Source of the DNA: Raja brachyura | Taxonomy: Eukaryota | Assembly: GCA_963514005.1 (NCBI GenBank) | Contig: OY740805.1 | Location: 36,704,001-36,768,000, forward strand | DNA length: 64,000 nt | Reading direction: 5' to 3' | Shown here: one piece after another, positions 6,751 to 52,459 of the stretch | Numbering within the stretch: the first letter of the stretch is position 1 | Layout: each line of letters begins with the position of its first letter | Made by a program: the position numbers and the translations under genes | The notes under the pieces: model-generated | Databases searched by the model: none | What the model saw: only the letters and a program-made list of their open reading frames with translations | What the model was told of the DNA's origin: nothing

Positions 6751-6756
6751 GCCTCT

Positions 6757-8432: not shown

Positions 8433-8475
8433 ATGCAGTGGAGTGTGGTCGCTTGGTCATGTCTGCTGTTGTCTG
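8433..8475 (+). CDS. Gene A leader (signal peptide) exon, MQWSVVAWSCLLLS-G
   Basis: ATG at 8433, hydrophobic peptide, phase-1 donor G|gtaggt matching the phase-1 V exon; paralogous leader at 25831; upstream acceptor (cctag, 8418) suggests a non-coding first exon. Confidence 0.85.
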
Positions 8476-8484
8476 GTAGGTTTA

Positions 8485-8517
8485 CACACACGCACGCGTA
8501 CGCAGACGCAGACGCAG

Positions 8518-8602
<85 letters not shown>

Positions 8603-8607
8603 CACAC
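8485..8607. repeat. (CA)n microsatellite in the leader-V intron
   Basis: Directly visible. Confidence 0.95.
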
Positions 8608-8696
8608 GTAGATTATGTACATAGGTATAATGGATGGATTTGACTGGGTGGGTGGAAAGGCCAGAGCCGAAAATATAATATTATTTCTGGTTTCAG

Positions 8697-9029
8697 GTGC
8701 TGGTGGATCCGATGAATCGATCATACAATCACCGAAGCAGATCACAGTTACTGAAGGCGGGACTGTGCGGCTAAACTGTGCTGTTGTTGACAAGACAATC
8801 CGTTCAATTGGGGGCATTAGTTGGTACAAAGATGCGGGAACTCGTACCATTTCCAATGAGCGCGGCGACTATTATGGTCGCGTTTTGAAATATAGTTCAC
8901 CGGGAACCCTCAATGAATCAATCGAAATCACTGACATGAAAATGACCGAGACAGGAAGGTATTATTGCCGAGTGAGAGTTTTCTTCTTGCGAAGATATTG
9001 GGGCCACGGCACAGAAGTCACTGTCACAC
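8697..9029 (+). CDS. Gene A Ig V-set exon (NKp30/NCR3-like, joined VJ)
   Basis: tttcag| ... C|gtaagt, 333 nt, phase 1-1; canonical B-strand Cys, ISWYKD Trp, YYC and WGHGTEVTV J-like motif. Confidence 0.92.
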
Positions 9030-11135: not shown

Positions 11136-11953
11136 CAATGTGCAAGATCAATCATAGAGTGACATAGTGATGCACCGTGGAGACAGGCCCTTCGACTCAA
11201 CTTACCCACAACGTGCCCAATAATGTCCCAGCTATCCTAGTCCCACCTGTGTGCGTTTGGTTCTTCGAAACATGTCCTATCCATGTACCTGTCCAACTGC
11301 TTCTTAAACAATGGGATAGTCCCAGCCTTTACGACCTCCTTTGGCAGCTTGCGCAATACACCGAGCTTTCTCTGTGGGGAAAAAATTCCCCTCGGATTCT
11401 TACTAAATCTTTTCTCCTTCACCATGAACCTCTGGTCCTCGATACCCCTACTCTGGGCTAGTGATCGTGGATCAGTATACAGGACCAAGAGAGAATAGGT
11501 GCACAATTTGAAATAATCCGTGCCGATTCATGGTCGCTTTCGACGTTGCAACATCCATGAATTTTGAAGCAGAACATCGGAATAACAAACATAAGACCGT
11601 AAACTGGCGGGGAAGATGGTGGAACTGTAAGGGAGCCATTTTTTCCCAACGAAGAGCAATCCAGTTCCCTCTTAATTCACATGCACGCTACGGTCACTCC
11701 GACTGCTCCATATTAGGGGGTAATTTTCAGCTACTAATTACCTATCAGGACGCACGTCCTTGGTATGAGAGAGGACGCAAGGAAAAACGCAGGCAATATG
11801 TACAACCTGCACACAGACAGACAGCATCCGAGGTCAGGATCGAACCCGGATTGTCGCGAGTAAACGAGACTGTCAAGATAGGTGTAATGGGTGGCATTGA
11901 TTGGCTGGACCTAAAGGCCAGCGCCGAAACTAAAATATTATTTCTGGTTTCAA

Positions 11954-12271
11954 GATCTGTTGCACAAACACCTTCTAATGTCAACGTTACTGAAGGCGGG
12001 ACTGTGCGGATTAATTGTACATTTGTTGGCAAGACAATTAGGGCCTTCAGTTGTTACAAAGACGAGGAAACTCGTGCCGTTTCTAACACGGGCGGCGACT
12101 ATTAGTTCACTTGGAATTCTAAAAGAAATAGAAATAGTTCACTTGGAATTCTAAAATAATCCATCGAAATCACTGACCTCAAAATGAACGATACAGGAAA
12201 GTATTACTGCCCAGTGACTGTTTTCCCAGTGGAAATATATAATGGCCACGGCACAGAAGTCACAGTCACAC
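11954..12271 (+). pseudogene. Pseudo-V exon (psiV2) of the same family
   Basis: Acceptor tttcag mutated to tttcaa (11953); core Trp changed to Cys (SCYKD); TAG at 12103 from a 22-nt internal duplication; donor at 12272 intact. Confidence 0.88.
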
Positions 12272-13501
12272 GTAAGTTTGCGTTATCTTAACTTTATCCT
12301 AAAAAACATTCTTAACACCGACCACCACACGCCTCAACAACGAAGCATTGTCAGTTCAGATTCAGGCACAGAAATTAATTATATATGTAGGAACCAGGAG
12401 CCCCAGTTTAAGACTAAGGAGTAGGCCATTTAGGACTGAGGAGGAAAACCTTTTTCACCCAGCGAGTTGTGAATCTGTGGAATTATCTGCCTCAGAAGGC
12501 AGTGGAGGTCAATTTTCTGGATGCTTTCAAGAGAGAGTTAGTTGGTGCTCATAAAGATAGCGGAGTCAAGAGATATGGGGAGACGGCAGGAACGGGGTAC
12601 TGCTTGTGGATGATCAGCCATGATCACAGTGTATGGCGGTTCTGGCTCGAAGGGCCGAATGGCCTACTCCTGCACCTGTTGTCTATTGTCCATTGCCCAC
12701 ACCGGCCAACATGTCCCGTCGATACTAGTCCCACCTGCGTGCGGTTGGTCCATATCCATTGAAACCTGTCCAATCCATGTACCTGTCCAAGTGCTTCTTA
12801 CATGATGGGATAGTCCCAGCCTCAACGACCTTCTCTGGCTGCTTGCTCCATACAGCGACCATTTTCTCCATCGAAGAGCAATCCAGTTCCCTCTCAATTC
12901 ACATGCAAGCTACGCCCACTCCGACTCCTCTATATATCAGGGGCAATTTACAGCAGTTCATTACCTATCAGGACGCACGTCTTTGGGAGGAGAGATGAAG
13001 CAGTAACGCCCAGGGGAAACGCAGGCAATAACACGGAGAACGTGAAAACTCCACACCGGCAGTCAGCATTGAGGCCAGGCTGCTGGCCCACAGAGGCAGT
13101 AGATGCTTCGGCTATTTCCTTAAGCAATCAAGGTGGAGGTAAAAGGAACTGCAGATGCGAGATTACAAACAAAAAGACGCAAAGTGCTGGAGTAACTCCG
13201 CGGGCCACGCAGCATTTCTGGAGAACATGGATACGACATATTGTGGGATGCTGAAGAAGGGTGCCGACCTGAAACGTCGCCTATCCATGTTCTCCACAGA
13301 TGCTGCCTGACCCGTTGACTTATTCCAGCACTTTGTATTCTGTGTAAGATTTCCACATCTGTTGTTCCTTTTCATGCAAATGAACTGTACGAATTGGTCT
13401 ACGTTTAGAATGATAGTGGGAACATTTCGGTGTATAAGAATGGAAGGAAACAGAAATAAACTGGGAAAGTAATTTGTGAACTTGATGTTTTATTCCTACA
13501 G

Positions 13502-13653
13502 GCCCGAGCCTTGTAGAAAGCCCTGCATGGGGATTACGTTGGCAGCTGCTTGTAATGGGAGTGAAACTTGCAACGTTCATTGTGATCAACGTTATAATAG
13601 TCTTCATCATCCGCTCATGGGAGTCTTGGGGATTTGCCAGCCGGAGGAAATAA
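13502..13653 (+). CDS. Gene A stalk/TM/short tail exon with intramembrane Lys (activating type): RPSLVESPAWGLRWQLLVMGVKLATFIVINVIIVFIIRSWESWGFASRRK*
   Basis: Acceptor ttttattcctacag|, open in phase 1, about 24-residue hydrophobic span with Lys (13564-13566), stop at 13651-13653, donor gcg|gtaaga at 13674/13675; conserved paralog at 28605. Confidence 0.85.
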
Positions 13654-13787
13654 GCCTAACAAGCTGGTCAAGCGGTAAGAGGATTGCCAGCTACACGTGT
13701 GGATTGCATTAGCAGCTGAGGTCACTGGACAATGGTGCCTTTTATTGTCACCTGCAAGGTGCTACCATAGTGAAAATACTTTATTTC

Positions 13788-14845
13788 AAACTAAACTAAA
13801 TTAAACTAAACTAAACTAAACTACACTAAAATATAATAAAATAAAATACCCAAAATGAAACTAAGCGAAACTAAACTAAACTACACTTAACAAAAAAAGT
13901 TTAACTAAACTTAACTAAACTTAACCAAAGCAAACTAAACTAAATTAAACTAACATAAACTAACCTAAACTAAAATAAACTAAACAAAATTAAACGAAAC
14001 CAAACTAACTAAAGTATACTAAACTAAACTAAACCAAACTTCACGAAACCAATCCAAAGTAAAGAACACGAAACTAAACTAAACGAAATTAACCTAAACT
14101 AAACAAAAAAACATAACTAAACGTAACCAAACAAAATTACACTAATCTAAACGAAACTAAAATTAACTTACATTTAACAACTAAACTAATCTAAAATATA
14201 TTCAGTTCCATAGAAATCCCACACTACCTCCGCCACACTCTCATTTCATTCCTACCATCAAGAAGAATATATCTGAGTCTGAAAACCATGACCACAAGGT
14301 TCAAGAACAACTTCTTCCCTGCAACTATCAGGCCTTTGAACACCACATAAGACTAGGCTCAACTTTGAACATTTATGGACTTTCTTGCGTTGCACCGTGA
14401 ATCTTGTATTTTCGTGTTTGCACTAGATACAAATTTATTGTTGATTTTGTTTATTATTTTTTCTCAAAGTTTGATGTATGTACAGGCCTGTTACGCTGCT
14501 GCAAGTAAGAATTCCATTGTCCGGCTGTCGGTACAACAAACTTAGATAAAATATAATAACGAACCTAAACTAAGCTAAACTAAAATAAAATAAAATAAAA
14601 TAAAATACAGTAATCGAAACTAAACTAAACTAAACTAAACTAAAACAAACGTAACTAAATTTAACCAAACCAATCCAGAGCAAAGCAAACGAAACGAAAC
14701 TAAACTAAACTAAACTAAATTAACCTAAACTAAACAAAAAAAGCGTAACTAATCTTAACTAAGCGTAACCGAACCAAACCAAACAAAATTAAACAAATCT
14801 AAACGAAACTAAAGTAAACTTAAATTGACAACTAAACTAATTTAA
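13788..14845. repeat. Degenerate (AAACT)n satellite blocks within a roughly 0.6-kb tandem duplication (about 13990-14560 vs 14640-15215)
   Basis: Visible pentamer runs; duplicated flanks (gttccatagaaatcccacactacct ... cggtacaacaaac). Confidence 0.8.
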
Positions 14846-15630
14846 AATACATTGAGTTCCATAGAAATCCCACACTACCTTGGCCACGCTCTCATTTAAC
14901 TCCTACCATCAAGTTGAAGATATCTGAGTCTGAAAACCGTGACCACAACGTTCAAGAACAGCTTCTTCCCTGCAGCTATCAGGCCATTGGACACCACAGA
15001 CGACTAGGCTCAACTATGAGCATTGATGGAATTACTTGTGTTGCGTCAAGGATCTTGTATTTCCGTGTTTGCATTAGATACAAATTTGTTGTTGGTTTTG
15101 TTTATTATATTTTATCAAAGATTGTTGTGTGTACAGGCCTGTTACGCTGCTGCAAGTAAGACTTCCATTGTCCGGTTGGCGGTACAACAAACCTAAATAC
15201 AATATAGTAAATAAAACAAACAATACATTTGTAACTAGTGCAAACCCTCTTGACTCTTGCAACGTAGACTTGCTGCAACAAAACAAATGCGACATGCCAG
15301 GGAAAACTAGACCGATCCAGGCCAGGAATAAGGAACTCATACAGGACTTGGATGGAACATGGATAGGACATGTTTGGAGGGATATAGGCGAAACGTAGGC
15401 AGGAGGGTTTAGTGTAGCTGGGACATGTGGACCGGTGTGGGGAAAGTGGACATAAAGAACTTATATCCATGCTGTATCACTCCATGACTCTAATACTTGT
15501 AATTGTGTGGACACATATTTGACAAGAATTTTAATAATATTAATTGCAGTCAATTGTGTTCAATGCTATTTATGCTTTTTGTTTGTGCCTGTGCGTGTGG
15601 TATACTAATGTATCTATTTTATTTTCTCAG

Positions 15631-15690
15631 ACCATAAGCGTTGAACTCCCTACATATTTGAATAAACTCATCCAGCAGATGAAACCAAGA
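15631..15690 (+). other. Gene A terminal (3'UTR) exon with poly(A) signal; codes HHKR* if joined directly to V
   Basis: Strong acceptor tattttattttctcag|, AATAAA at 15661-15666; conserved at 31831. The 3' end is approximate. Confidence 0.65.
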
Positions 15691-15919
15691 AGAGCAAACC
15701 CATCACTGAATCAATATTAGCTTAGTCAGCTGTGCTGATACTGTTGCGGATCAATACCCATTTGGGATAATGTGATTTGTGAAATCTTACACTCATTAAA
15801 ACTCCACATTGTCTTCGTGTTTGTTCATTCCTGGCAACAACAGATTCTAGTCAGAGTGGTTACATTTCAAGCGTAGACCAATAGACAATCGACAATAGAC
15901 AATAGACACTATTTGTTAT

Positions 15920-16560
15920 ACAGTATACAAGTCCAGCCGCTCCATTCTTTCAACATTTGACAGTTCCGCCATCCCGGGAATGAATCTTGTAAACCTACGC
16001 TGCACTCCTACAATAACAAGAATGTCAATCAAATTAAGGGATCAAAACTGCACACTATACTCCAGGTGTGGTCTCAATAAGGCCCTATATAACTGCAGAA
16101 GGACCCTTTTGCACTTATACTGAACTCCTCTTCACAACAAGTGGAGTTCAGTATTGGAGTATAGAGGTCCTTCTGGCCATTCATGGCCAACATGCCATTC
16201 GCTTTCTTCACTGCCTGCTGTACATGCATGCTTAATTTCATTGACTGATGAACTAGGACCCCCAGATCTCATTCTACTCCCCCTTTTCCCAACTTGGCAC
16301 GATTCAGATAATAATCTGCCTTCCTAATAATCTGCCAGCAAAGTGGATAACCTCACATTTATCCACACTAAACTGATCTGCCATGCATCTGCCCACTCGC
16401 CCAACCTGTCCAAGTCACCCTGCATCCTCATATCCTCCTCATAGTTCACACTGCCACCCAGCTTTGTGTCATCTGCAAATTTGCTAATGGTACTTTGAAT
16501 TACTTCATCTAAATCATTGATGTATATCGTAAATAGCTGCGGTTGCAGCACCAAGGCTTA
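15920..16560 (-). mobile_element. CR1 fragment
   Basis: SKFADDTKLGG RT motif on the minus strand. Confidence 0.85.
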
Positions 16561-17324
16561 TGGTCACCCATTTATTTTCTCCATAAATGTTTCCTGACCC
16601 GCTGAGTTACTCCAGCTTTTTGTATCTATTTTCGGACATGGACTGGTGCAGCTCCCGGCTGCAAACCATTTTAACTCTCCTTCCCATTCCCACACTGATG
16701 CCTCTGACCGAGGTCTCCTCCATTGCCTGAGTGAAGCCATTGGAGAAACCGGACTTCATACTCCATCTCCGTAGCTTAGAACCCAATATTGAACTCTGAA
16801 TTTTCCAATGTCAGGTAAATAACCTGCAACCTTTCCCTCCCTTGCGTGTGATGCACCCATTTTCCCTGCCCGCCCCTTCCACATTTTTCCCTTCCTCTGG
16901 TTCTGCATTCATATTTTCCGTTCACACCTCTAATTCCCCTATGGATTGCACAATTGTATCAACCTCCCTTACCCTTTCACGCAGCGAGTTTCAGATCAAT
17001 TTGACACACTATTGCACCTTTATACGACTTGTATTGATTGTATCATGTTTGGTGGAGAGGTTCCCGTGTCGTATGAACACACATTTAATATTTAAACACA
17101 CAGTTTAATGGACAATAGACAATAGGTGCAGGTGTAGGCCATTCGGCCCTTCAAACCAGCACCACCATTCAATGTGATCATGGCTGATCATCCCCAATCA
17201 GTACCCCGTTCCCGCCTTCTCCCCATATCCACTGACGCTGATGATGCTGCCAGCCTTTTTGAGTTTCGTAAATCTCCGAAACTGGGGTTCCCCATCCCAC
17301 CCCTTCCAAAGTCCACAATCAGTT

Positions 17325-22900: not shown

Positions 22901-25830
22901 AAAGCTGAGCACCTGGTGAAAAACCACGCGGGTCACGGGAAGAATGGACAAACACCGTGCAGACAGCACCCGTAGTCAGGATCGAACCCGGGTCTCTGGC
23001 GCTGAGAGGCCGCCCAAACTGTTACACTGTGTCTCTCCAGTAGACCATGTCGTGAGAGTATATTTCTTGACACCAGCAAAGCAGAAGTATGAGAATTCAA
23101 CTGAGTAACGTTAAACCGACTGCAGGCGAGAAGTCTAAATATAATTCCACAAAACGTTAGCAAATATCCAAACTTCTCTTATTATTATTATTTTAACGCC
23201 TTTTAGGGAAGTTTTAGTAGCACTTTATGTCCCCTTCTTCAACTGTCATGACTGCTCACGTGGAAGTGAAAACAATTATGAAACCTGGATCGGAATGCTA
23301 GGTTAATCATTTAGTGACCAAACAGCGGAATAACTTTATTCCTCTCTCTGCTGTATGACTATATCAGTCTCTGACACAGCGGTTGGCCAGGGACCGGATT
23401 TCATGGAGTCGAGCACCATCCTGACCTCTGTTGCTCTCAGAGTGGAGTTGACACGAACCCCCCCCCCCGCCCCCCCCCCCCCCCCCCCCCCATGCAGTTC
23501 TTCGGTTTCCTCCCAAACTCTAAAGACGTGCAAGTTTGTAGGTTAATTCAGTTCATTCATCGTAAACTGCCCCGTGTGTAGTATAGTGCTGGTGTACGGG
23601 TATGGCTAGTCGGCGCTGACCTGCCGAAGGACATCTTCCACGCTATGTTTCTAAAGTCTAAAGTCTAAAATTACTGGTGGGATTAATTGTTAATGAAGTA
23701 ATCTGTTGGAGTGAGAAGTCAAACGAAGGAACAAGTAAAACCGTAGGCCCGTTCTCTGCATACTTTCATATGGGGTGAGGACAGGAACGGGGTACTGATT
23801 GGGGATGATCAGCCATGATCATATCGAATGGCGGTGCTGGCTTGAAGGGCCGAATGGCCTACTCCTGCACCTATTGCCTATTGTCTATTGGGAGAAAGTA
23901 GAGATGGTTGAAAACTTCAAATTCCAAGAGGTCAAAGTCACCAACAACTTTTCCTGGACCAATCATTGAAACGACGGTCAAGAAAGCCTCCACTTCCATA
24001 GAAGGCTCAGGAAGTATAGCGTGTCCCCGAACTCCCACCAACTTCTACAGATGCACCATAGAAAGCATTTTGTCAGGATGCATCACAACTTGGTCTGGGA
24101 TCAACTGCATCCAACACCGCAAGAAATTGCAGCGAATTGTGGATGCAGCCCAGACCATCACACAATCCAACCTCCCTCTCATTGAATCCATTTATGCCTC
24201 ACCCTGCCTCGGCAAGGCCAATGGTATAATTAAGGACCCGTCACACCCTGGCCACTCCCTCTTCTCCCCTCTCCCATCTGACAAAAGGTGTAGAAATGTG
24301 AAAACGCACACCTCCAGATTCAGGTACAGTTATTCACAGCTGTTATCAGGCAACTGAATCACCCTACCAAAACCTGAGAGCAATGCTGAACTACTATCTA
24401 CCTCATTGGTGACCCTTGGATTATTCTTGGTTGGACTTTGATGGATTTACCTTGCACAAAACGTTATTACCATATAATGTATTTATACATTATTTCTCTC
24501 CATAGATGCTGCCTCACCCGCTGAGTTACTCCAGCATTTTGTGTCCACCTTTCATGTATCTGTACACTGTGAATGGCTCAATTGCAATCATTTATTTGTC
24601 TTTCTGCTGATTGGTTAGCATGCAAGAAAAACATTTCACTGTTCCTCAGATAGACACAAACATCTGGATTGACTCAGCGGGCCAGGCAGCATCTCTGGAG
24701 GGAAGGAATGTTGGAGGTTTCGCGTCCAGACCGTTCTTCAGACCTCTGTACCTCGGTACATGTGACACTACACTAAACTGAGTGCAGATCTAGATTATCT
24801 GTTCGGGCAATGAACGAAATACCGAAATCTGAATTTGGGTGATTAATACAATAGACAATAGACAATAGGTGCAGGAGTAGGCCATTCGGCCCTTCGAGTC
24901 AGCACCGCCATTCACTTTGATCATGACAGTCATCCACAATCAGTATCCCGTTCCTGCCCTTTTTCCATATCCCTTGACTCCGATATCTTTAAGAGCTCTT
25001 TGTGTAAACAAGTGTTTCCTCATCTCCATTCTAAATGGCTTACGCCATATTCTTAAACTGTGGCCCCTGGTTCTGGACTCTCCCATAGGGAGCATGTTTC
25101 CTGCCTGTAGCTTGTCCAAACCTTGAAATATCCTGTATGTTACAACAATATCCCCTCTCATCATTCTAAATACCAGAGTATACATGCCCAGCCGCTCCAT
25201 TCAATCAACACACGACAGTCCCGCCATCCCGGGAATTAACCTGGTGAACCTACCCTGCACTCCCTCGATAGCAAGAATGTTCTTTCTCAAATTTGGAGAC
25301 CAAAACTGCACAGAATACTCCAGGCGTGGTCTCACTAGGGCCCTGCACAACTGTAGAAGGACATATTTACAACTGCAGAAGGACATATTCGCTTTCTTCA
25401 CTGCATGCTGTACCCGCATGCTTACTTTCAGTGATTGATGAACAAGTACTCCTAGATCCCGTTGTACTTCCCCTTTTCCCAACAGGATGGAAGTAGAACC
25501 ATGAGAGTAGCGGATGGCTTACTATCGCCTCCACCTTACATTTGGATCTGCCACTAAGTGGATTGTTTGCACGCAAATAGTTAAATGGATTCGTCATCTG
25601 TGAGGCAGGTGACGCACTCTGTCCTCCGGAAGAGCAATCTGGCATGTTCCTTCTGAAGGGATTTCACAATGTTTCACCCAAGACGTTAAACAAACCCATA
25701 GTGCCGGAGGAACTAAACGGGTCAGGCAGCATCACTCGAGGTAAAAACAGACGGCTATCCCATGTTTTCCACAGATGCTGCCTGACGTGTTTTTGTCTGT
25801 TGGTTTTCGCCTACAGGTAGCCGTTCAAAG

Positions 25831-25866
25831 ATGCAGTGGAGTGTGGTCGCTTGGTCCTTTCTGCTA
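25831..25866 (+). CDS. Gene B leader exon (3' end lost in assembly gap), MQWSVVAWSFLL...
   Basis: Near-identical to the gene A leader, same upstream acceptor (ctacag, 25816); runs into Ns at 25867. Confidence 0.82.
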
Positions 25867-26256
25867 NNNNNNNNNNNNNNNNNNNNNNNNNNNNNNNNNN
25901 NNNNNNNNNNNNNNNNNNNNNNNNNNNNNNNNNNNNNNNNNNNNNNNNNNNNNNNNNNNNNNNNNNNNNNNNNNNNNNNNNNNNNNNNNNNNNNNNNNNN
26001 NNNNNNNNNNNNNNNCCACAAACGCACACGCACACNNNNNNNNNNNNNNNNNNNNNNNNNNNNNNNNNNNNNNNNNNNNNNNNNNNNNNNNNNNNNNNNN
26101 NNNNNNNNNNNNNNNNNNNNNNNNNNNNNNNNNNNNNNNNNNNNNNNNNNNNNNNNNNNNNNNNNNNNNNNNNNNNNNNNNNNNNNNNNNNNNNNNNNNN
26201 NNNNNNNNNNNNNNNNNNNNNNNNNNNNNNNNNNNNNNNNNNNNNNNNNNNNNNNN
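25867..26256. other. Assembly gaps (25867-26015 and 26036-26256) at a CA-repeat
   Basis: N runs. Confidence 1.
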
Positions 26257-26468: not shown

Positions 26469-26471
<3 letters not shown>

Positions 26472-26536: not shown

Positions 26537-26542
<6 letters not shown>

Positions 26543-27172
26543 GAAGAGTGGGTGGGTGGATGAGTGTAGATTCATAAGAGCAGCGGATGGCTCATTATCG
26601 CCGCCAGGTTTATTCTGTCATCCATTTAGACCCCGGGGTTGAAAGTGGGATGTTTAGATTTTTCGAAATTTAGTGGTGTCATATAAATAGCGAGAAAGAT
26701 TCTTCAAGAAAGCAGCATGAAACAGATCAAATAAAAAATAGGCGACGTGTCAGCAAACTGAATTTAACGTCGGCAAAGGCGAGCTCCACGCTAATTCGTC
26801 CACACCGCGACGCTATCCCATTTTAGCATCAACTCACAACACATCAGAAGACATTTACAGAGGGCTATTAACCGACCTACCTGCACGTCTTTGGAACGTG
26901 GGTGGAAACCGGATCACCCGGAGAAAACCCGCGAGGTCCCTGCGAGAACGTGAAAACACCACACAGACAGACAGCACCCGGGTTCAGAATCGAACCCGGG
27001 TTGTCTCATGACATGTAAGAGGCGTCCCACCAAGTACTTGAAATGCTGAGACATGGAAAGGCCATGATCCTAACCCGAGTAAATGGGATTGTGTAGATAG
27101 GTGTAATGTATGGCATTGACTGGGTGGGCCGAAAGGCCAGCGCGGAAACTATAAGATTATTTCTGGTTTCAG

Positions 27173-27505
27173 GTGCTGTTGGAGCCAATGAATCGATCAT
27201 ACAATCACCGAAGAATATCACAGTTACTGAAGGCGGGACTGTGCGGATAAACTGTACATTTGTTGGCAAGACAATCAGTTCAATTGGGGCCATTAGTTGG
27301 TACAAAGACGTGGAAACTCGTGCCGTTTGCAACACGAGTGGCGACTATTATGGTCGCGTTCAGAAAAATAGTTCACCGGGAATTGTAAAAGAATCCATCA
27401 AAATCACTGACCTCAAAATGAACGAGACAGGAAAGTATTACTGCCGAGTGACTTTTTTCACGGGGGGAATATATAATGGCCACGGCACTGAAGTCACAGT
27501 CACAC
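27173..27505 (+). CDS. Gene B Ig V-set exon (NKp30/NCR3-like, joined VJ)
   Basis: tttcag| ... C|gtaagt, 333 nt, phase 1-1; INC, ISWYKD, YYCRV and GHGTEVTV motifs. Confidence 0.93.
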
Positions 27506-32104: not shown

Positions 32105-32625
32105 AGTATACAAGTCCAGCTGCTCCATTCTTTCAACATTTGACAGTCCCTCCATCCCGGGAATTAACCTTATAAAGCTACGCAGCGCTCCCTCAATAGG
32201 AAGAATGTCCTTCCTCAAATTAGGGGACCAAAACTCTAGGCGTGGTCTGGACACTCCAGGCGTGGTCTCACTAAGGCCATATTCATCTGCAGAAGGACCT
32301 CTTTGCTTCTATACTCAACTACTCGTGTTATGACGGCCAACATGCCATGCGCTTTCTTCACTGCCTGTTGTACCAGCATGCTCACTTTCATTGATTGATT
32401 AACTTGGAAGCCCAGATCTCGTTGTACGCCCCCTTTCCCCAAATTGACACCATTTATATAATAATCTGCCGTCCTGTTCTTGCCACCAAAGTGGATGACC
32501 TCACATATATCCACATTAAACTGATCTGCCATGCATCTGCCCACTCACCCATCCTGTCCAAGTCACCCTGCATCCTCATAACATCCTCCTCGTAATTTAC
32601 ACTGCCACCCAGGTTTGTGTCACCA
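32105..32625 (-). mobile_element. CR1 fragment (paralog of 15920-16560)
   Basis: CEVIHFG and LVRPRLE motifs; same position in the duplicated unit. Confidence 0.8.
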
Positions 32626-42113: not shown

Positions 42114-42476
42114 NNNNNNNNNNNNNNNNNNNNNNNNNNNNNNNNNNNNNNNNNNNNNNNNNNNNNNNNNNNNNNNNNNNNNNNNNNNNNNNNNNNNNNN
42201 NNNNNNNNNNNNNNNNNNNNNNNNNNNNNNNNNNNNNNNNNNNNNNNNNNNNNNNNNNNNNNNNNNNNNNNNNNNNNNNNNNNNNNNNNNNNNNNNNNNN
42301 NNNNNNNNNNNNNNNNNNNNNNNNNNNNNNNNNNNNNNNNNNNNNNNNNNNNNNNNNNNNNNNNNNNNNNNNNNNNNNNNNNNNNNNNNNNNNNNNNNNN
42401 NNNNNNNNNNNNNNNNNNNNNNNNNNNNNNNNNNNNNNNNNNNNNNNNNNNNNNNNNNNNNNNNNNNNNNNNNNNN
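42114..42476. other. Assembly gap, probably hiding the gene C leader exon
   Basis: Left flank matches sequence upstream of the leaders of A and B; right flank matches the leader-V intron of B (26560 onward). Confidence 0.85.
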
Positions 42477-42724
42477 GTTGAGTGTAGATCCATAAGAGCA
42501 GCGGATGGCTCATTATCACCCCAGGTTTATTCTGTCATTCAGTGAGACCCCGGGGTTGAAAGTGGGATGTTTAGATTTTTCCAGATTTTTCGAAACGCTG
42601 AGACATGGGAAGGCCATGATCCTAACGCGAGTAAATGGGATTGTGCAGATTGGGGTAATGGATGGCATTGACTGGGTGGGCCGAAAGGCCAGCGCGGAAA
42701 CTGTAAGATTATTTCTGGTTTCAG

Positions 42725-43057
42725 GTGCTGTTGGGTCCGACGAATCGATCATACAATCACCAAAGAATATTACAGTTACTGAAGGCGGGACTGTGCGGAT
42801 AAACTGTGCATTTGTTGGCAAGACAAACAGTTCAATTGGGGCCATTAGTTGGTACAAAGATGTGGAAACTCGTTCCGTTTGCAACACGAGTGGCGACTAT
42901 TATGGTCGCGTTCAGAAATATAGTTCACAGGGAATTCTAAAAGAATCCATCGAAATCACTGACCTGCAAATTAACGAGACAGGAACGTATTACTGCCGAG
43001 TGACTGGTTTCACAGGGGGAATATATAATGGTCACGGCACAGAAGTCAGAGTCACAC
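42725..43057 (+). CDS. Gene C Ig V-set exon (NKp30/NCR3-like, joined VJ)
   Basis: tttcag| ... C|gtaagt, 333 nt, phase 1-1; 97 of 111 aa identical to the gene B V by manual alignment. Confidence 0.93.
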
Positions 43058-43129
43058 GTAAGTTTTCGGGATCGTAACTTTATCTTTACTGTTCTTAAAA
43101 AACATTCCTAATTCGACTCAACTTGCCTT

Positions 43130-43720
43130 TGTGTGCAGGAAGGAACTGCAGATAGACTCAAAAAACATTGAGTAATTCAGCTGGACAGGCAGCATCTCTG
43201 GAGAGAAGGAATGTGTGACGTTTCGGGTCGAGACCCTTCTTCAGACTGGTTAGGGATAAGGGAAACAAGAGATATAGGCGATGATGTAGATATATAATGA
43301 ATGACAGATGTGGAAAAAGGTAACGATGCTAAATGAAACAGGCCATTGATAGCTGTTTGTTGGGTGAAAACGTGAAGCTGGTGGGACTTGGGTGGGGGAG
43401 GGGTGGTGGGGGGGGTGGGATGCAGGGATTACTTGTTGGAATAGGAGGAAGAATTAAAGTGTTTAGCAACTGGGAGATCAGGTAGGTCCAGGTGCGAATG
43501 TGTTCAGCGAAACAATCGGCCGGTCTGCGTTTGGTCTCGCCGATGTTTTAGAGTCCACATCCGGAACAAGAGCTGCAGTAGATGAGGTTGGAGGAGGTGC
43601 AAGTTAACCACTGCCTCACCTGAAAGGACTGTCGGGGTCCCTGGAGAGAGTCGAGGGAGGGGGTACAGTGACACGTGTTGCACCTTCTGCATTTGCAGGG
43701 GAAGGTACCTGGGGAGGGGC
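43130..43720 (-). mobile_element. Penelope-like element fragment (GIY-YIG region and terminal repeat)
   Basis: GTFPCKCRRCNTC...LTCTSSNLIYCSSCSGCGL, typical PLE endonuclease Cys motif. Confidence 0.75.
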
Positions 43721-43949
43721 GTGGTGTGGATGGGAAGGGATGAGCTAACCAGGGAGTTGTGGTGGGAACGGCCTGTGCGGAAGGCGAAAAGGTGTGGAGA
43801 TGGGTAAATATGAGGAACTCCAGATGCTGGTTTACACCGAAGAGTGCTGGAGTAACTCTGCGGGTCAGCAACATCTCTGGAAAGAAGGAACGGGTGACGT
43901 CTTGGGACCTTTCTTCAGACTGAGAGTCAGGAGGGAGGGATATGGCAGG

Positions 43950-44500
43950 CGCTAGTGAGACCACACCTGGAGTACTGTGTGCATATTTGGTCCCCTAATT
44001 TGAGGAAGGACATTCTTGCTATTGAGGGAGTGCTGCGTAGGTTCACCAGGTTAATTCTAGGGATGGCGGGACTGTCATTTGCTGAGAGAATGGAGTGGCT
44101 GGGCTTGTATAGTTTGGAGTTTCGAAAAATGAGAGGGGATCTTATTGAACCATATAAGATTATTAATGGTTTGGACACGCTAGAGGCAGGAAACATGTTC
44201 CCGACGTTGGGGGAGTCCAGAACCACGGGCCACACAGTTCACGAATAAGGGGTTAGCCATTTGAACTGAGACGAGGAAACACTTTTTCTCACAGAGAGTT
44301 GTGAATCTGCGGAATGATCTGCCTCAGAGGGCGGTGGAGGTGGGTTCTCTGGATACATTCAAGAGAGAGCCAGATAGGGCTCTTAAAGGTAGCGGAGTTA
44401 GGGGATCTGGAAGGCAGGAACGGGGTACTGATTAGGGATGATCAGCTATGGTCACATTGAATGGCAGCGCTGGCTCGAAGGGCCGAATGGTTTACTTCTG
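43950..44500 (+). mobile_element. CR1 3' fragment
   Basis: RPHLEYCVHIWSP and MRGDLIE motifs. Confidence 0.85.
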
Positions 44501-45011
44501 CGACAGATCAAAGCAGACGATGACCAGAACGATGATGTTGGCTGAGGGAAAGGTGACAAGGAGGCATGCAATCCGTGAAATTAATCAAGGGGGGCAGTGA
44601 AACGTGGGAGAACTAGGATGGGGAGCGTCGGAGAGAGCGGGGATGCAAGAGTATTTGGAATTAGAGAAGGCAATAATCATACCGCTGGGGTGTAACACCA
44701 CAGAGACGAAGAGGTGTGTAGTTAATTGGCTTGGTATAAAAGTAAATTGTCCCTAGTGTGTGTAGGATAGCGTTAGTGTGTGGGGATCGCTGGTCGGTGC
44801 GGATTCGGTGGGCCGAAGGGCCTGTTTCCGCGCTGCATCTCTAAACTAAAACAAAACTTTAAAACAAAAACACTTTAATGCCTTCTCTCCATAACACCCG
44901 ACACCCGTACTAATCATGAATCTATCAATCTCCGCCCTTAAAATATATAAATTGGCTTGCCCTGCACATCACAGGTTGCCGTGCCTTTACTGTATTTTTA
45001 TTTCTCAACAG

Positions 45012-45143
45012 CGTCTGATCGGGGCGGCAAGGATTCAAATCGAAATTATATCTTTCCGCTTGTATTTGCACTCTTGGGCGTAGCGTTGCTTGGGATGGTA
45101 TTGATTCTCATCATTTACCTGCGACGCCTCGGTCGATCTCCAG
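45012..45143 (+). CDS. Gene C stalk/TM exon, uncharged TM: PSDRGGKDSNRNYIFPLVFALLGVALLGMVLILIIYLRRLGRSP
   Basis: Acceptor tttttatttctcaacag|, 132 nt phase 1-1, donor CAG|gtaata; hydrophobic span followed by an RR stop-transfer. Confidence 0.9.
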
Positions 45144-45511
45144 GTAATAACATCAAGTCAACTCAAATCAAGTCAAGTTTATTTGTCACATACAAGAAGA
45201 TGTGCAGTGAAATGAAAGTGAGATGAAAGATGTGCAGGGCAATGCCTGCGGATTGTGAAAAACACCAGAACAACCTTCTCTCCATACCCCCTGACACATT
45301 TAGCCAAAAGGGCCAGATCTAACTCCCTCCTAAATACAGCCAATGAACTGGCCTCAACTACCTTCTGTGGCAGAGAATTCCACAGATTCACCATTCACTG
45401 TGTGAAAAATCATTTTCTCATCTCGGACCTAAAAGACTTCCCCCTTATCCTTAAACTGTGACCCCTTGTTCTGGAGTTCCCCAACATCAGGAACAATCTT
45501 CCTGCATCTAG

Positions 45512-45735
45512 TGTTAAAGAAGGAACTGCAGATGCTGGAGAATCGAGGGTTACACAAAAAGCTGGAAAAACTCAGCGGGTGCAGCAGCATCTAAGGAGCG
45601 AAGGAGATAGGCGACGTTTCGGGTCGAGACCCTTCTTCAGACTGCGGAAGGGTCTCGACCCGAAACGTCGCCTATCTCCTTCGCTCCTTAGATGCTGCTG
45701 CACCCGCTGAGTTTTTCCAGCTTTTTGTGTAACCC
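45512..45735. mobile_element. Young Penelope-derived inverted terminal repeat insertion forming a perfect hairpin, with TSD
   Basis: Arms 45547-~45635 and ~45647-45735 are exact reverse complements; ttcctgcatctag duplicated at 45499-45511 and 45736-45748. Confidence 0.75.
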
Positions 45736-47446
45736 TTCCTGCATCTAGCCTGTTCAACTCCTTAACCATAAGGAGTCACGGGGAGAAAGTACAAACCTCG
45801 TACAAATATCATCCATAGTCGGGTTCGAACGCGTCTCCGGCGCTCCAGAGATGCTGCCTGACGCTCTGTTACTCCAGCATTTTGTGTTTTCTTCAACAAC
45901 AAAAAAACTGAACGTATTGCACAGATTTTGGAGTAAATGTTGCACTAAAAACAGAAGCGAGAAAGAATCTTGTGTATGCATAGAAAATAGTTGCAAGATC
46001 TTCATCTACTTATTGGACCCTAAATTTACTCGAGGAAGCTTCTGACAAGGAGATACGAGGGGGAACAAGTTCCGAATGTGGAGGGAGAGAAGAAACGTGA
46101 CACAGGGGATTATTAAATTTGCAGCAAACACAAGTTTATTATCTCAATGTGTGGGAAGGAACTGCAGAAAGTGGGTCAGACACAAAATGCTGGAGTAACT
46201 CAGCGGGACAGGCAGCATTCTGGAGAGATGGATTGGGTGACGTTTCGGATCGAGACCATTCATCAGACTGGGGATCTGGGGACAGGGAGACACGGAGATA
46301 AGAACATGTAAGGAGTGAGAACGAGAAGGGAAAACAGTACCCTTTCCCTTGATCTCCACCCCCTTTGATGTCTCATTCCACACCTTACACTTCCTTATCT
46401 CTGTATCTCCCTCAAGTCAAGAGAGTTTATTGTCATGTGCCCCAGAGAGGACAATGACATTCTTGCTTGGGGCCAGGGTGCGAGTGGTCCTTGATTATGC
46501 TGCTGGTCTTGCCGAGGCAGCTTGAGGAATAAATCGAGTCAATAAGAACGAGGTTGGTTCGTGTGATGGTCTGGGCTGCGTCCACAATTCAATGCAATTC
46601 CTTGCGGTCTTGGATGGAGCTGTTCCCAAACTAAGCTGTGATGCATCCCGATACATTGCTTTCAATGTTGCATCTGTAGAACTTGGTGTCAGTTGTAGGG
46701 CACACGCCAAACTTCCTACGCCTTCTAGGAAGTAGGGGCGTTGGTGTGCCCATGTAATGTTTAGAGACATGCGCCCAAACGTGAGATTCATTATCGTTGA
46801 AACATTAGGGCGCAGTGGTGTTGGTTTCCAACGGGAATGGTGACGGACGCATCTCTGTCCTCCAGTTCCTGCGGACTTCCACCGCTGAAAGTATAGGATT
46901 TTGATGTGTGTATGTGTGTGTGCTTTATCATAATTCCTTACAATGCCATGTACGGCAGTGTTCGCAACTTATACTGAAGTGTGGGTGGCCATTGGCCCGC
47001 TATAAGCACATCCGCCCTTTGACAGGTCTTGTTTTTGATCCTTCTGGGGGTCCATAGCCCCCTCCTCATCTGGCAAACCAGGTGGGGGAGACGGTTTAGT
47101 CGCTGACTTCCCGACCATGGAGGCGGTAGCACGGGATTACATGGTTACCGTGGCGGGCGGAACTCCTGTGAAATGGGACCGGCGTAACTGGTACACCTTG
47201 GTTGACATGGGAAAGTTGGGAGGAAGCTTGTTTCGATGTCGTATGACTCTATATTAAAAGAACAATTTTACAGAGATAATATAATTGTGTAAAGGCGAGG
47301 TTATGTTAATGAAGAGTAAGGTTATGTTAATGAACGGACTATATTCTCATAGGCCCCATCCTGTACTGAATGACATCAAATTTTATTATTGGTAGATATT
47401 TTGTTTCGGTGCTTGAAATAAGTAACTTGTTCACAATATATTACAG

Positions 47447-47478
47447 ATAAAGGTACCGGAACAGAACATGGGGCGAAG
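47447..47478 (+). CDS. Gene C cytoplasmic mini-exon (DKGTGTEHGAK)
   Basis: ttacag| 32 nt AAG|gtatgt in non-repetitive DNA; converts phase 1 (TM exon) to phase 0 (last exon) exactly as required. Confidence 0.75.
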
Positions 47479-47564
47479 GTATGTAGTCAATTAAACTTTA
47501 AATGTTTCATCTGACATAATCAGTGGTTATTTGCCATTTTGTGTTTCTTTGTGAATAAAATAGA

Positions 47565-48235
47565 CAATAGACGATAGACAATAGACAATAGGTGCAGGAG
47601 TAGGCCATTTGGTCCTTCGAGCCAGCACCGCCATTCAATTTGTTCATGGCTGATCATCCACAATCAGTACCCCGTTCCTGCCTTCTCCCCATTTCCCATG
47701 ATGCGGCTATCTATAAGAGCCCTATCTAGCTCTCTCTTGTAAGCATGCAGAGAACCGTCCTCCACCGCCCTCTGAGGCAGAGAATTCCACAAACTCACAA
47801 CTCTCGGTGTAAATAAGTGTTTCCTCGTCTCCGTTCTAAATGGCTTACCCCTTATTCTCAAACTGTGACCCCTGGTTTCGTGCTCCCCCAACATCTGGAA
47901 CGTTTCATGCCCCTAGCGTGTACAAACCCTTAATAATCCTTTATGTTTCAATAGGATCCCCTCGCATCTTTGCAAATTCCAGAGTATACAAGCCCAGCCG
48001 CTCCATTCTCTCAGTGTATGACAGTCCTGCCATCCCGGGAATTAACCTTGTGTACGCTGCACTCCCTCAATAGCAAGAATGACCTTTCTAAAATTAGGGG
48101 ACCAGAACTGCACCCAATACTCCAGGTGTGGTGTCACTAGGGCCCTGTACAACTGCAGAAGTACCTCATTGCTCTTATACTCAATTCCTCTAGTTATGAA
48201 GGCCAACACTGCCTGCTGTACCTTCATGCTTACTT
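47565..48235 (-). mobile_element. CR1 3' fragment with (ATAGACA)n tail
   Basis: LVTPHLEYWVQFWSP motif. Confidence 0.8.
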
Positions 48236-49419
48236 TCAGAATAGAAATATGTGATTGCTGCTGTCTCAGCCTCCGTCCCCTATTTGACAGAATACGCTGG
48301 TAGACCGTTTCAGAGAGAAAAACGGAGTCAACTGAACATCTGTAAGGATGGAAAAGTGAAGGATCGATAGAGGGTATATCGACAGTTTCTAATATGCGAG
48401 GTGACGCAAGTTAACTGCGACCTCTTGTCACTTAGAACATAGACGTAGAATATAGAACACAGGGACGGGTTATTCAGCCCACATTATTTCTGCCTAACAC
48501 GATGCCAGGTTAAACTGGTCTCATCTGCCTGTACAGGATCCTTATCGCTCTATTATCTGCACTTTCATGTGCAATTCTTGCTATTGAGGGAGTACAGCGT
48601 AGGTTTGCAAGGTTAATTCCCGGGATGGCGGGACTGGCATATGCTGAGTGAATGGGCTTGTGGAGTTTAGAAGGATGAGAGGCGATCTTATTGAAACATA
48701 TAAGATTATTAAGGGCTTGGACACGCTGGAGGCAGGAAACATGTTCCCGACGTTGGGGGAGTCCAGAACCAACGGCCACAGTTTAAGAATAAGGGATAAG
48801 CCATTTAGAAAGGAGACGAGGAAACACGTTTTCACACAGCGAGTTGTGAGGGTGGAATTCTCTGCCTCAGTGGAGGTCGGTTCTCTGGATACTTTCAAGT
48901 GAGATCTAGATAGGGCTCTTAAAGATAGCGGAGTCAGGGGATATGGGGAAAAGGCAGGAACGGGGTACTGATTGGGGATGATGAGCCATGATCACATTGA
49001 CTGGCGGTGATGGCTCGATGGGCCGAATGGCCTACTCCTGCACCTATTGTCTATTGTCTATCCATAAGCCTCTTAAGCGCCAATGACGTACTGCCCCCAC
49101 AACCACCGATGGCAACTTCGTTACAGTCCCCAACCAACCACTGATATAAAAAAACTTTTCCACATATCTCCATTAACCGCACCCCGCATATACACGCACA
49201 CCTCTCACAGTACAGCTATGCCCCCTTGTGTTCGACATTTCGACACAATCAATGTTGATTTTTTTTTCACGGTGACAAAACCAGAATGGGAAACGTTCCC
49301 TTCAGGCAATTGCTTCGGGATAAATATTGCATTTTCAATTGAAGACCTTTTCTAGCGAGTTGCTGGAAAATGGATCATTTATCGCAATCATTGGCGCAGC
49401 CACGGTACAATCGGCTTAA

Positions 49420-50680
49420 CATTATTTATTATTTATTTATATTTTTATTTATTTTATTTTTTATTTAAATTAGTAGACACATAGTAAAACACATTTTGTT
49501 CGTTGTAGTCATACATTATCAATATTATTCATATTAACAATTGTATAGTAATTGTACTTCAATATATTTTTTCAATTTTTATAAACATAGAAATTAATAG
49601 AGAGAGAGAGAAAACAAAAAAAAGGAAAAAAAGTTGAAGAATGGTGTGTTCAATAGAGTATGCATCGTTGGAGACATACCCGCATCTTATAAAATGTAAT
49701 TCTTCACCTATTCTTTGATTTAGGTTTCAGTCGGGTTCTCGTGCCGAACCAGTTTGCCCCTTCAAATATTCAATAAATGAGGACCATATTATTGTAAATA
49801 GTTCTTGTTTGTCCATTAAGACAAATCTTAATCTTTCCAAATATAGGGTCGCCAACATTTCCGTAGTCCACATTTTAATTGTGGGGGTTATAGGACCTTT
49901 CCAAAATTTTAATATTAATTTTTTCCCAATTATTAAACTATAATCGATAAAAGTTCTTTGATTCGTTGTATATAATTCATTTTGTTCTATTATTCCTAAT
50001 GTTATTAATTTTGAATCAGGGACCAATTTGGTATTGACGACTTCCGAAATTATCTTGAAAATTTCCATCCAAATTTTTTTTTTACAGCTTACAAATATGT
50101 GCGTTAGATTAGCCTCTAAATGTTGACATTTATCACAAATAGAGGAAACGCATGGGAAGATTCTATTTAATTTGGTTTATGAATAATGCAATATATGTAA
50201 TATTTTAAATTGTATTAAAGAATGTCTAGCATTTAACGAACAGTGATGTACATGTTGTAAACTTTCATCCCAAATTTCTGGCCTTATTGTTTGATCTAAT
50301 TCGTTTTCCCATGATTGCCTACATAATTCCGTCTTGGGTGCATCATTATCTAATAGAATATTATAAATATAAGATATCAATTTTTCTGTAAATATTCATC
50401 AAAAAATTCTGTCTTTCTAATTCTATAATCCTGTGTATTTCTTAGCATAGTCTCTAATCTTTTGAATGAAGCCCATAATTTTTAATTCCTGAAATGAGAG
50501 AAATGAACTTTTCCTATAGAAATCACCCATCTTAGTAATTCCATGATTTTTCCATTGTAAAAAACCCTTATCCATCAATGAGGGTTTAAATGTAGCATTG
50601 TTTACAATGGGAAGAGATAGTGGTAAACAATCCAATTTTAATGTCTTCTTTATTTGTTTCCAAATGCGTATTCCACTAAT
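49420..50680 (-). mobile_element. 5'-truncated L1 (intronic)
   Basis: CSLNARHSLIQFKIL and LILKFWK motifs; T-rich tail at about 49420-49470. Confidence 0.85.
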
Positions 50681-51707
50681 CTGCTCAACATTCTATGGTG
50701 TTGGAATTAACAGGTGACGGTGGATATATTAATCTCCCAATTTAATGGCGAACCTAAAACAATGAAGTTGCTTTCTTCCGGCGGCAAGCTTCGCAGCGGA
50801 GCTGTTATGAATGTTAGGATGATGAACCGCTCCATGAAAGAGTCATATTGACCAGAAACTAACACAATGCCCGAAACCTCAAGTCGTTGTGAACTTCAGA
50901 AGATAAATATGTTACTGAACAATTTCCAATCTTGTGTAGGTTTCAAATCTTGTAACAAATAATTCGTGGCATTCCAGAGACAAATACAATGCTCGATATC
51001 TCAAACCAACAGGCCATAGACAATAGGTGCAGGAGTAGGCCATTCGGCCCTTCGAGCCAGCACCGCCATTCAATGTGATCATGGCTGATCATCCACAGTC
51101 ATTACCCCGATCCTGCCTTCTCCTCATATCCCCTGAATCCGTCGCGAACGTTTGAAGAGGGATAAGTTACCGGACAATATCCAATCGTATGTAGGTTTCA
51201 AATGGAGCAATAGAGTGATACAGTATGGAAAAAGGTCCTTCGGCCCAACTCGCCCACACTGGCCAACAATGTCACAGCTACACGAGTCCCACATGCATGC
51301 GCTTGGTCCATATCCCTCCAAACCTGTCCTAATCATGTACCTGTCCAACCGTTTCTTAAATGTTGGGATAGTCCCAGCCTCAACTACCTACTCTGGCGGT
51401 CTGTTCCATACACCCGCCACCCTTTATGTGGAAAAGGTTACTCCTTAGATTCCTATTGAATCTTTCCCCCCTTCACCTGGAACAACTGTCCTCTGGTCCT
51501 CGATTCCTCTACTCTGGGTAAGAGACACCGTGCATCTACCCTATCTATTCCTCTCGTGATTTTGTACACCTCAATAAGATCACCCCCTCACCCTCCTGCG
51601 CTCCAAGCAATAGAGACCCAGCCTACACAACCTCTCCCTGCAGCTCACACCCTCTAGTCCTGGCAACATCCTCGTAAAGTATTGCAACAAATAATCCTGA
51701 ATCTTAA

Positions 51708-51992
51708 GGGCCTGTCCCACTTTACGAGGTAGTCACGAATTCTCCCGAGTTTTCCCCTTGGTTCAAACTCGCAGAATGTTCGTAACGGGTCCGTAGGAGG
51801 CCGTAGATATGTCGTAGTGCCTCGTTCTGTGAGCCGTATGTACTCGGAGCATCAGGCAACACGGGACGTTATTTTCCAGCCTGAATAAAAATATCCACGA
51901 GTAAAACAATCGTCGGCGGGATGCCCCGAGTATCTACGGCTGGTTTACGATATATCTACGGACTCCTACGGCCTCCTACAGAACGGTTACGA
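51708..51992. mobile_element. Truncated non-autonomous DNA transposon (PIF/Harbinger-like terminus) with internal inverted repeat
   Basis: Starts taa|GGGCCTGTCCCACTT; 51780-51806 is the near reverse complement of 51967-51992; second TIR not found. Confidence 0.45.
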
Positions 51993-52084
51993 TCTTTGGA
52001 CTTTAGTACATGGACGAGTTGCTGGACAATTTCCAATCTCGTTTGGGTTTCAAATCTTGTAACAAATACTTGGTTGCATTCCAG

Positions 52085-52459
52085 GAAAATGACACATCGA
52101 AAAATATAATCTATGCTGACCTGAATATGGACAAGTCGAACAGGAATCACCGTTCCGGTCATTGTGCCAGAGGGAATGGGGCACGGGTCAAAAACCCAGG
52201 CGGAGCCGGACCTCTGTCGGCGGCAGGCGGAAATGAAGACGCGGTCGTGTACTCCGCCTTGAGACACCCCGCTCCGATGGAGAATCGAGCTTCGGCGGCA
52301 GGTGGAAGGGAAGACCCGGTCGTCTACTCTGCCTTGAGACATCTGGCTCCGACGGACAATCCAGCATCGAGCAAGCAGAAGAAGAATACCAGAAGAAAGG
52401 ACCAACAGGTTGTGTACGCAACCGTGAATGCTCAACGTCCACCAGTTCTGCATCACTGA
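52085..52459 (+). CDS. Gene C last exon: cytoplasmic tail with four ITIMs (IIYADL, VVYSAL x2, VVYATV)
   Basis: gcattccag| phase 0, open to TGA 52457-52459; motifs at 52106-52123, 52244-52261, 52319-52336 and 52409-52426 fit (I/V)xYxx(L/V). Confidence 0.9.
   Translation, partial: ENDTSKNIIYADLNMDKSNRNHRSGHCARGNGARVKNPGGAGPLSAAGGNEDAVVYSALRHPAPMENRASAAGGREDPVVYSALRHLAPTDNPASSKQKKNTRRKDQQVVYATVNAQRPPVLHH

Follow-up and report, generated by a model that had tools for sequence, protein, structure and literature searches.

The locus examined here raises the question of whether a 64,000-nt stretch of genomic DNA from the skate Raja brachyura (contig OY740805.1, hereafter the window) carries a paired set of activating- and inhibitory-type immune receptors and, if so, to which receptor family that set belongs. 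Three genes, designated A, B and C, lie in head-to-tail order on the same strand, and each is predicted to encode a leader, a single germline-joined V domain of the variable-joining (VJ) type, a short stalk and a transmembrane (TM) segment. The cluster is likely to consist of three paired-receptor genes of the elasmobranch NCR3 (NKp30-like) family, with a Lys-bearing TM and short tail in genes A and B and an uncharged TM followed by four immunoreceptor tyrosine-based inhibitory motifs (ITIMs) in gene C.

Organization of the receptor cluster

Across the whole window, only three intact exons with an immunoglobulin (Ig) signature were found, one in each gene:

8697..9029, plus strand: V(A), VJ-type V-set exon of 333 nt, intact; it has diverged furthest among the three
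27173..27505, plus strand: V(B), intact V exon
42725..43057, plus strand: V(C), intact V exon, 87% amino acid and 93% nucleotide identity to V(B)

All three are 333 nt long, consist of one open frame, are in phase 1 at both ends, and have near-identical splice contexts (acceptor tttcag/GTG, donor CAC/gtaagt, the slash marking the exon boundary). The Pfam V-set model matches each of them over its full length (E 7e-11 to 1e-12), and each retains the Cys-Trp-Cys core, with a J-like GHGTEV(T/R)V at the exon end. A full-length V-set match together with a terminal GHGTEVTV is the pattern of a non-rearranging VJ-type V domain. The original prediction for this DNA had described three intact V exons, and their coordinates, length, phases and splice contexts were all recovered; a fourth, decayed V exon is also present in gene A and is described below.

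The V exons are followed by two types of signalling module:

13502..13653, plus strand: TM(A) exon, encoding the stalk, a Lys-bearing TM segment LLVMGVKLATFIVINVIIV and a tyrosine-free tail of 13 aa, then the stop codon
28605..28765, plus strand: TM(B) exon, encoding a Lys-bearing TM segment, a short tail without tyrosine and a stop codon; 94% nucleotide-identical to TM(A)
45012..45143, plus strand: gene C stalk and uncharged TM exon, LVFALLGVALLGMVLILII
47447..47478, plus strand: gene C mini-exon, 32 nt, D-KGTGTEHGAK
52085..52459, plus strand: gene C cytoplasmic exon, with four ITIMs and a stop codon
52217..52369, plus strand: 75-bp coding tandem duplication within that exon, 2.0 copies at 83% match, which doubles the VVYSAL ITIM

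In genes A and B the exons continue in phase into a stalk and a Lys-bearing helix, LL(V/I)MGVKLATFIVIN..., with the motif ..MGVKLATFIV.. in common. The gene C tail carries the ITIMs IIYADL (52106-52123), VVYSAL twice (52244-52261 and 52319-52336) and VVYATV (52409-52426), and its mini-exon is the sole match to the DKxxGTQVVxK of relatives among 13 open AG..GT 32-mers in the 6.9-kb intron. Splice sites are canonical for all modelled exons, no C-type Ig exon was found in the window, and none of the three N runs falls inside any V, TM or tail exon. The Lys-bearing TM with tyrosine-free tail that had been predicted for genes A and B can be read in both of their TM exons, the predicted uncharged TM and four-ITIM tail of gene C is confirmed in its three downstream exons, and the proposed product lengths of 175 aa (A), 178 aa (B) and 304 aa (C, assuming a leader like that of A) were reproduced. 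The splice junctions remain predictions, indirectly supported by collinearity with relatives, by the unique mini-exon match and by the contrast between intact exons and the decayed fourth V exon.

The V domains of genes B and C, two genes 14 kb apart on one strand, are 87% identical and stand on modules of opposite type, which is the layout of a paired receptor. Sharing of one V domain between opposite modules typifies those paired receptors that recognise identical or similar ligands.

Two side observations concern genes B and C. An extra, apparently unpaired Cys lies in the C'-C'' region of V(B) (27325-27327, ..AVCNTS..) and V(C) (42877-42879, ..SVCNTS..); this Cys, which might form an interchain disulphide, is missing from V(A), but the majority of batoid relatives keep it and some carry two. 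In the second intron of gene C, a minus-strand match to the TM exon of the same gene was detected at 46283-46366 (39% over 28 aa, E 6e-4), which may reflect a chance hydrophobic likeness or an inverted relic.

Relatives among cartilaginous fishes

Relatives were sought with each exon separately as query. V(B) retrieved a sawfish (Pristis) NCR3-like protein, P0001, of 178 aa, which is 58% identical and has the same Lys-TM. A search with P0001 recovered its paralogue P0003 (295 aa), which carries an uncharged TM and an ITIM tail on a V domain 91% identical to that of P0001, as well as Lys-TM or ITIM forms in Mobula, Hemitrygon and Narcine. A HMMER scan of V(C) against 1.84 billion representative proteins gave Rhinoraja longicauda P0008 as the best match (68% identity, E 8e-41), followed by single-V proteins of batoids and sharks, the majority of them with an ITIM tail. 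Lower in the scan came lungfish, turtle and gecko proteins named NCR3 or NCR3-like and then multi-V frog 'NCR3' models, the nearest non-chondrichthyan matches being lungfish and reptile NCR3.

RefSeq models with one or the other architecture, often named "NCR3-like", were found in sawfish, mantas, stingrays, an electric ray and several sharks. The paired layout proposed in the original prediction, i.e. the same V domain on a Lys-TM or an ITIM module, therefore recurs across these groups. The exons of the window are collinear with the protein models Rhinoraja P0008 and sawfish P0003. Furthermore, three tail motifs are common from sharks to the window (membrane-proximal xIYAxL, central VVYSxx and C-terminal QVVYATV), and NIIYADL, QVVYATVN and the mini-exon are conserved over the same range. 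In the V-domain tree, the window sequences and Rhinoraja are resolved as (Rhinoraja,(A,(B,C))) with support of 99/99, inside a batoid clade (100/94) that groups with two shark ITIM clades (96/84). A V-domain search and phylogeny had been put forward as the check on the predicted affinity; their outcome places the three domains closest to NCR3-like batoid proteins, within the well-supported skate clade, with the deeper branches forming a polytomy.

Taken together, the cluster is real and is probably a functional paired receptor set of an already annotated elasmobranch NCR3 family. The original prediction had left its novelty open, and that novelty is now largely removed, because automatic annotations of many elasmobranch genomes already include both architectures and the NCR3 family of sharks has been published (Kinlein et al. 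2021, Immunogenetics 73:333, as cited in PMC10450919). Among the papers searched, none was dedicated to skate NCR3. Specific to this locus are the decayed second V exon of gene A, the sharp edge of a block shared by genes B and C, and the ITIM duplication.

Two further features of the closest relative were observed. In Rhinoraja P0008 the stalk contains an additional ..MSTAVTVTVTR.., a repeat of the V-exon end, and the tail continues past the position at which TM(A) of the window has two stop codons.

Affinity to NKp30

Against the PDB, turtle NCR3 matched human NKp30 at 4e-23, whereas CTLA-4, the family ranked next, was reached at 2e-6; the reptile proteins are therefore true NCR3. V(B) matched turtle NCR3 with 27% identity (E 8e-12). 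A profile built from 19 elasmobranch family members matched four human NKp30 entries of the PDB at 64-67 bits, the best single-domain match. NKp30 ranked tenth, and the rows above it were multi-V antibody constructs except for one single-chain T-cell receptor (TCR), for which a single stretch matched at 69.6 bits. Among the best 60 PDB rows for this profile (weakest 56.6 bits), SIRP, CD300 and TREM entries were absent, and pIgR stood below NKp30 with a match to part of the domain only.

In local hhalign comparisons of a batoid profile, the score was 174 with a shark clade including a Chiloscyllium 'NCR3', 149 with sarcopterygian NCR3, 124 with a SIRP-like group (identified as such by its PDB matches), and 92-108 with three other V groups; identity was 32% to NCR3 vs 24% to the SIRP-like group. 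In the best maximum-likelihood tree, a branch with support of 64/91 set all elasmobranch and sarcopterygian NCR3 rows apart from the others. In the models and their homologues alike, the V exon is followed directly by the stalk and TM. From other work, elasmobranch MHC-Ib genes lie in the major histocompatibility complex (MHC), and NKp30 is listed among the MHC-linked VJ genes (PMC10751288).

Several observations weigh against the preferred reading, and some of them concern the family assignment. V(B) alone returned only antibody V domains and pIgR, with no NKp30, among its best 60 PDB matches. IQ-TREE analysis of the 110-aa domain left the elasmobranch, sarcopterygian NCR3 and SIRP-like sequences as a weakly supported polytomy, and approximately unbiased (AU) tests rejected neither NCR3 (p 0.13) nor the SIRP-like group (p 0.19) as sister. 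Lastly, the TM charge differs: genes A and B have a mid-helix Lys, at position 7 of a 19-residue hydrophobic core, vs an Arg in turtle and human NKp30, and gene C is uncharged.

With the exception of the TM charge, these results also speak for a rival reading, in which the domains come from another VJ-type V family, either SIRP-like or specific to elasmobranchs, and owe their likeness to NKp30 solely to the VJ fold that both have, the 'NCR3-like' names being artefacts of automatic best-hit naming. The relatives do bear mixed automatic names (PIGR-like, TIGIT-like, SIRP beta-like), and a fold search of an AlphaFold model (pLDDT 80) against 48,161 PDB chains had SIRP alpha as its top match (Z 11.8), tied with TCR V domains, NCAM and others at Z 10-12. 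Such ties across Ig V families mean that the fold search cannot separate the families, and an ESM Atlas look-up of an outgroup protein returned generic V-set clusters only. In contrast, the family profile ranks NKp30 high where SIRP is absent from the best 60 rows, hhalign score and identity both favour NCR3, the nearest non-chondrichthyan single-domain matches are lungfish and reptile NCR3, and the best tree joins NCR3. Furthermore, the window holds no C-type exon, the V domain joins the TM directly in homologues, and the SIRP-like profile falls below NCR3, although the AU test permits a SIRP-like sister group. A SIRP-like or elasmobranch-specific origin is therefore considered unlikely.

Membership of the skate modular domain immune-type receptor (MDIR) family is far less likely still. 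MDIRs are a multigene skate family of activating and inhibitory Ig-superfamily receptors with CD300-, TREM- and pIgR-like domains (Cannon et al. 2006, as summarised in PMC3031540), and some relatives of the window genes have been automatically named PIGR-like and have two to five V domains. As far as that summary describes the MDIR domains, the window V domain differs from them in its J-like GxGT, single Cys pair and NKp30-type signatures. The lower, partial pIgR match and the absence of CD300 and TREM from the listed PDB matches point in the same direction.

The likeness to NKp30 seen in the original prediction thus stands at the family level, where names, nearest non-chondrichthyan matches, profile and hhalign results agree, and does not extend to strict orthology in view of the polytomy and AU tests. 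The genes are accordingly filed under the elasmobranch NCR3 (NKp30-like) family in the broad sense, which does not presuppose strict orthology to mammalian NCR3.

In turtles, the NCR3 and NCR3-like models P0169 (Malaclemys) and P0154 (Chelonia) show an uncharged TM or a tail with an ITIM-like VTYAAI at its end. The occurrence of inhibitory-type NCR3 relatives may therefore extend beyond cartilaginous fish and frogs.

Duplication history and evidence for function

The upstream portions of the three genes are less uniform than their V and TM exons, and comprise the following features:

8433..8475, plus strand: gene A leader exon, complete, MQWSVVAWSCLLLS, with a phase-1 donor CTG/gtaggt
11955..12270, plus strand: decayed V exon (pseudo-V) between V(A) and TM(A), found by local tblastn with the V domains
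25831..25866, plus strand: first 36 nt of the gene B leader exon, MQWSVVAWSFLL, with the ATG at 25831 and 12 codons visible
25867..26256, no strand: two assembly gaps around a 20-nt island, within the gene B leader exon and first intron
42114..42476, no strand: assembly gap, with its end 249 nt upstream of V(C)

The gene A leader and the first 15 aa of Rhinoraja P0008 share 80% identity. Decay of the pseudo-V exon is seen in two in-frame stops, deletions of 18 and 9 nt, an insertion of 12 nt and a replacement of the conserved Trp by Cys; its donor is intact and its acceptor AG is one base off, and the frame entered from the shifted AG also meets a stop. Self-alignment showed that 11857-17236, which contains the pseudo-V, TM(A) and downstream DNA, is collinear with 27076-33137, which contains V(B), TM(B) and downstream DNA. 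Likewise, 6650-8065 upstream of V(A), together with the leader, is collinear with 23785-25753 upstream of V(B). Given this collinearity, gene A is read as a B-like gene with a tandemly duplicated V exon, the second copy of which would have decayed after the duplication. The pseudo-V and the collinearity with gene B together imply that gene A was formerly a two-V receptor like Mobula P0002, a two-V relative with the same Lys-TM.

Genes B and C share a block of 520 bp at 93% identity (27040-27558 vs 42592-43111), which consists of the V exon and short flanks. The block ends about 53 nt past the V exon, where identity drops to 0.56. A shared V block followed by abrupt divergence indicates that one ectodomain has been set on opposite signalling modules; duplication, exon shuffling or conversion could each have placed it there.

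The ratio of nonsynonymous to synonymous substitution rates (dN/dS) was 0.49 for V(B) vs V(C), 0.36 for TM(A) vs TM(B), and about 1 (0.8-1.0) for V(A) vs B and C. Values for V(B)/V(C) and the Lys-TM exons suggest constraint, as estimated from small samples. The changes between V(A) and B/C are concentrated in the loops equivalent to the complementarity-determining regions CDR1 and CDR3 and in the C'C'' loop.

The remaining points on the opposing side concern function. Since the pseudo-V sits between V(A) and TM(A), the 175-aa product of gene A requires that it be skipped, and the gene model thus depends on the skipping of a pseudo-exon whose donor is intact. The gene B leader is interrupted by the assembly gap from 25867, so that its last codons and donor are unread. 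No leader-like sequence of gene C is visible in the window; by collinearity, this leader would be expected in or near the gap at 42114-42476. None of the sequencing runs matched to the stretch is listed on the record as RNA. Four of the five listed runs (shares 0.07-0.09), compared with 42477-48476, gave interspersed-repeat matches only; depth was zero over V(C) and the mini-exon and stayed low in the bins that cover the gene C TM exon. Pairing with an adaptor, recruitment of a phosphatase and the ligand, which are taken up below, are matters that we infer.

Several of these points would be explained if the cluster were partly or wholly non-functional, with gene A a pseudogene, through splicing-in of the pseudo-V or neutral drift of its V exon, and with genes B and C devoid of usable 5' ends. 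Inclusion of the pseudo-V would lead to premature stops in either frame. V(A) has a dN/dS near 1 against B and C and no longer carries the extra Cys or the greater part of the sequons, genes B and C have unread leaders, and none of the listed runs is of RNA. Set against this, the V, Lys-TM and gene C exons are all open with canonical splice sites, while the pseudo-V has decayed in the same repeat-rich region; dN/dS is well below 1 for B vs C and for the TM exons; the ITIM motifs are conserved with sharks; and V(A) keeps its Cys-Trp-Cys core and J-like GHGTEVTV. Loss of function across part or all of the cluster is consequently given a low probability, and a functional set of NCR3-family receptors remains the favoured reading.

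An AC-rich microsatellite lies directly 3' of the gene A leader, at 8476-8610. The 20-nt island between the gene B gaps (26016-26035) is also AC-rich and of the same kind, and the assembly break in gene B may have arisen because such a microsatellite is present there.

Proposed function of the paired receptors

[quoted passage not shown] A mid-helix Lys is typical of DAP12 partners, and the Arg in the TM of NKp30 pairs with CD3-zeta or FcR-gamma. Phosphorylation of the ITIMs in the gene C tail would recruit a phosphatase of the SHP type, and the B and C forms might compete for the same ligand, as paired receptors such as KIR, SIRP, PILR and CD300 suggest.

A more ambitious proposal can be advanced only tentatively. 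It is possible, though we hold it to be doubtful, that the batoid NKp30 lineage is a true pair, in which a Lys-TM form coupled to a DAP12-type adaptor and a multi-ITIM form have had their V exons kept alike by repeated conversion. Such a pair would be the oldest known to be based on NKp30, and mammals would have kept the activating half only. NKp30 is, to our knowledge, the one natural killer (NK) cell receptor that can be followed all the way between sharks and humans, and the unsplit precursor of antigen-receptor V genes is a relative of its V domain.

The occurrence of the same V exon on activating- and inhibitory-type modules shows early paired signalling built around an NKp30-like domain. 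The cluster also supplies constructs for the study of ligand binding (e.g. with B7H6-like genes), adaptor choice (Lys vs Arg) and ITIM function in cartilaginous fish. These findings extend known biology and introduce no new principle.

Other features of the window

The window has a G+C content of 43%, many repeats and the three N runs. Apart from the cluster, its content comprises reverse-transcriptase fragments and repeats, and no further genes were seen. A candidate segmental duplication of 2297-6136 and 52784-56500 was rejected; the two segments, 76-78% identical, are read as copies of a long interspersed nuclear element (LINE) because both hold minus-strand reverse-transcriptase open reading frames. 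An inverted duplication of 87% identity was detected near the window end (58585-59741 and 62090-63882).

Comparison with known receptor systems

The closest known system is the elasmobranch NCR3 family, as exemplified by Pristis P0001 and P0003, Heterodontus P0020, Carcharodon P0055 and Rhinoraja XP_078271940. Its members likewise form a multigene cluster with a single germline-joined VJ-type V domain, stalk and TM, occur as a Lys-TM short-tail form and an uncharged-TM multi-ITIM form, and share the tail motifs and mini-exon; in addition, the V domains of the window nest in the batoid clade beside Rhinoraja. Eight divergent, MHC-linked subtypes of shark NCR3 are reported to exist, by an account attributed to Kinlein et al. 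2021. The known members come from other species, the best match being only 68% identical, and the window differs from them in its four ITIMs, which arose via the 75-bp duplication, in the decayed second V of gene A and in the very recent V block of genes B and C.

Mammalian and reptile NKp30 share with the window a single VJ-type V domain with a GxGT J-like motif, the C'-C'' signature VxNxS/TxE/D-F/Y-xGRV/L and, in activating forms, a positive TM charge. They differ in the kind and place of this charge, an Arg close to the outer TM end vs the mid-helix Lys of A and B. NKp30 is single-copy in most mammals, and we know of no ITIM-rich paralogue of mammalian NKp30.

An expansion of NKp30-like VJ families in a cold-blooded vertebrate, some members having ITIMs, is also found in Xenopus. 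MHC-linked V genes with ITIMs (XMIV) were reportedly described there by Ohta et al. in 2006, and an expanded NKp30 cluster is said to have been reported by Flajnik et al. in 2012. The multi-V frog 'NCR3' models fall within the sarcopterygian NCR3 clade. The frog expansion is separate from that of the window and lineage-specific, and the batoid profile aligns to the frog group more weakly (103).

Skate MDIRs, as described in the summary cited above, are set apart by CD300/pIgR/TREM-like domains, vs the VJ-type NKp30-like domains of the window; this comparison was made with the MDIR description. In a more general comparison with KIR, LILR, PILR, CD300, teleost NITR and SIRP alpha/beta, the cluster shares near-identical ectodomains placed on ITIM tails or on Lys/Arg-TM modules, as well as exchange of ectodomain exons. 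SIRP further resembles the window in its VJ-like V domain, which was the top structural match, and differs in having a V-C1-C1 ectodomain where the skate genes have one V domain, with sequence profiles favouring NCR3.

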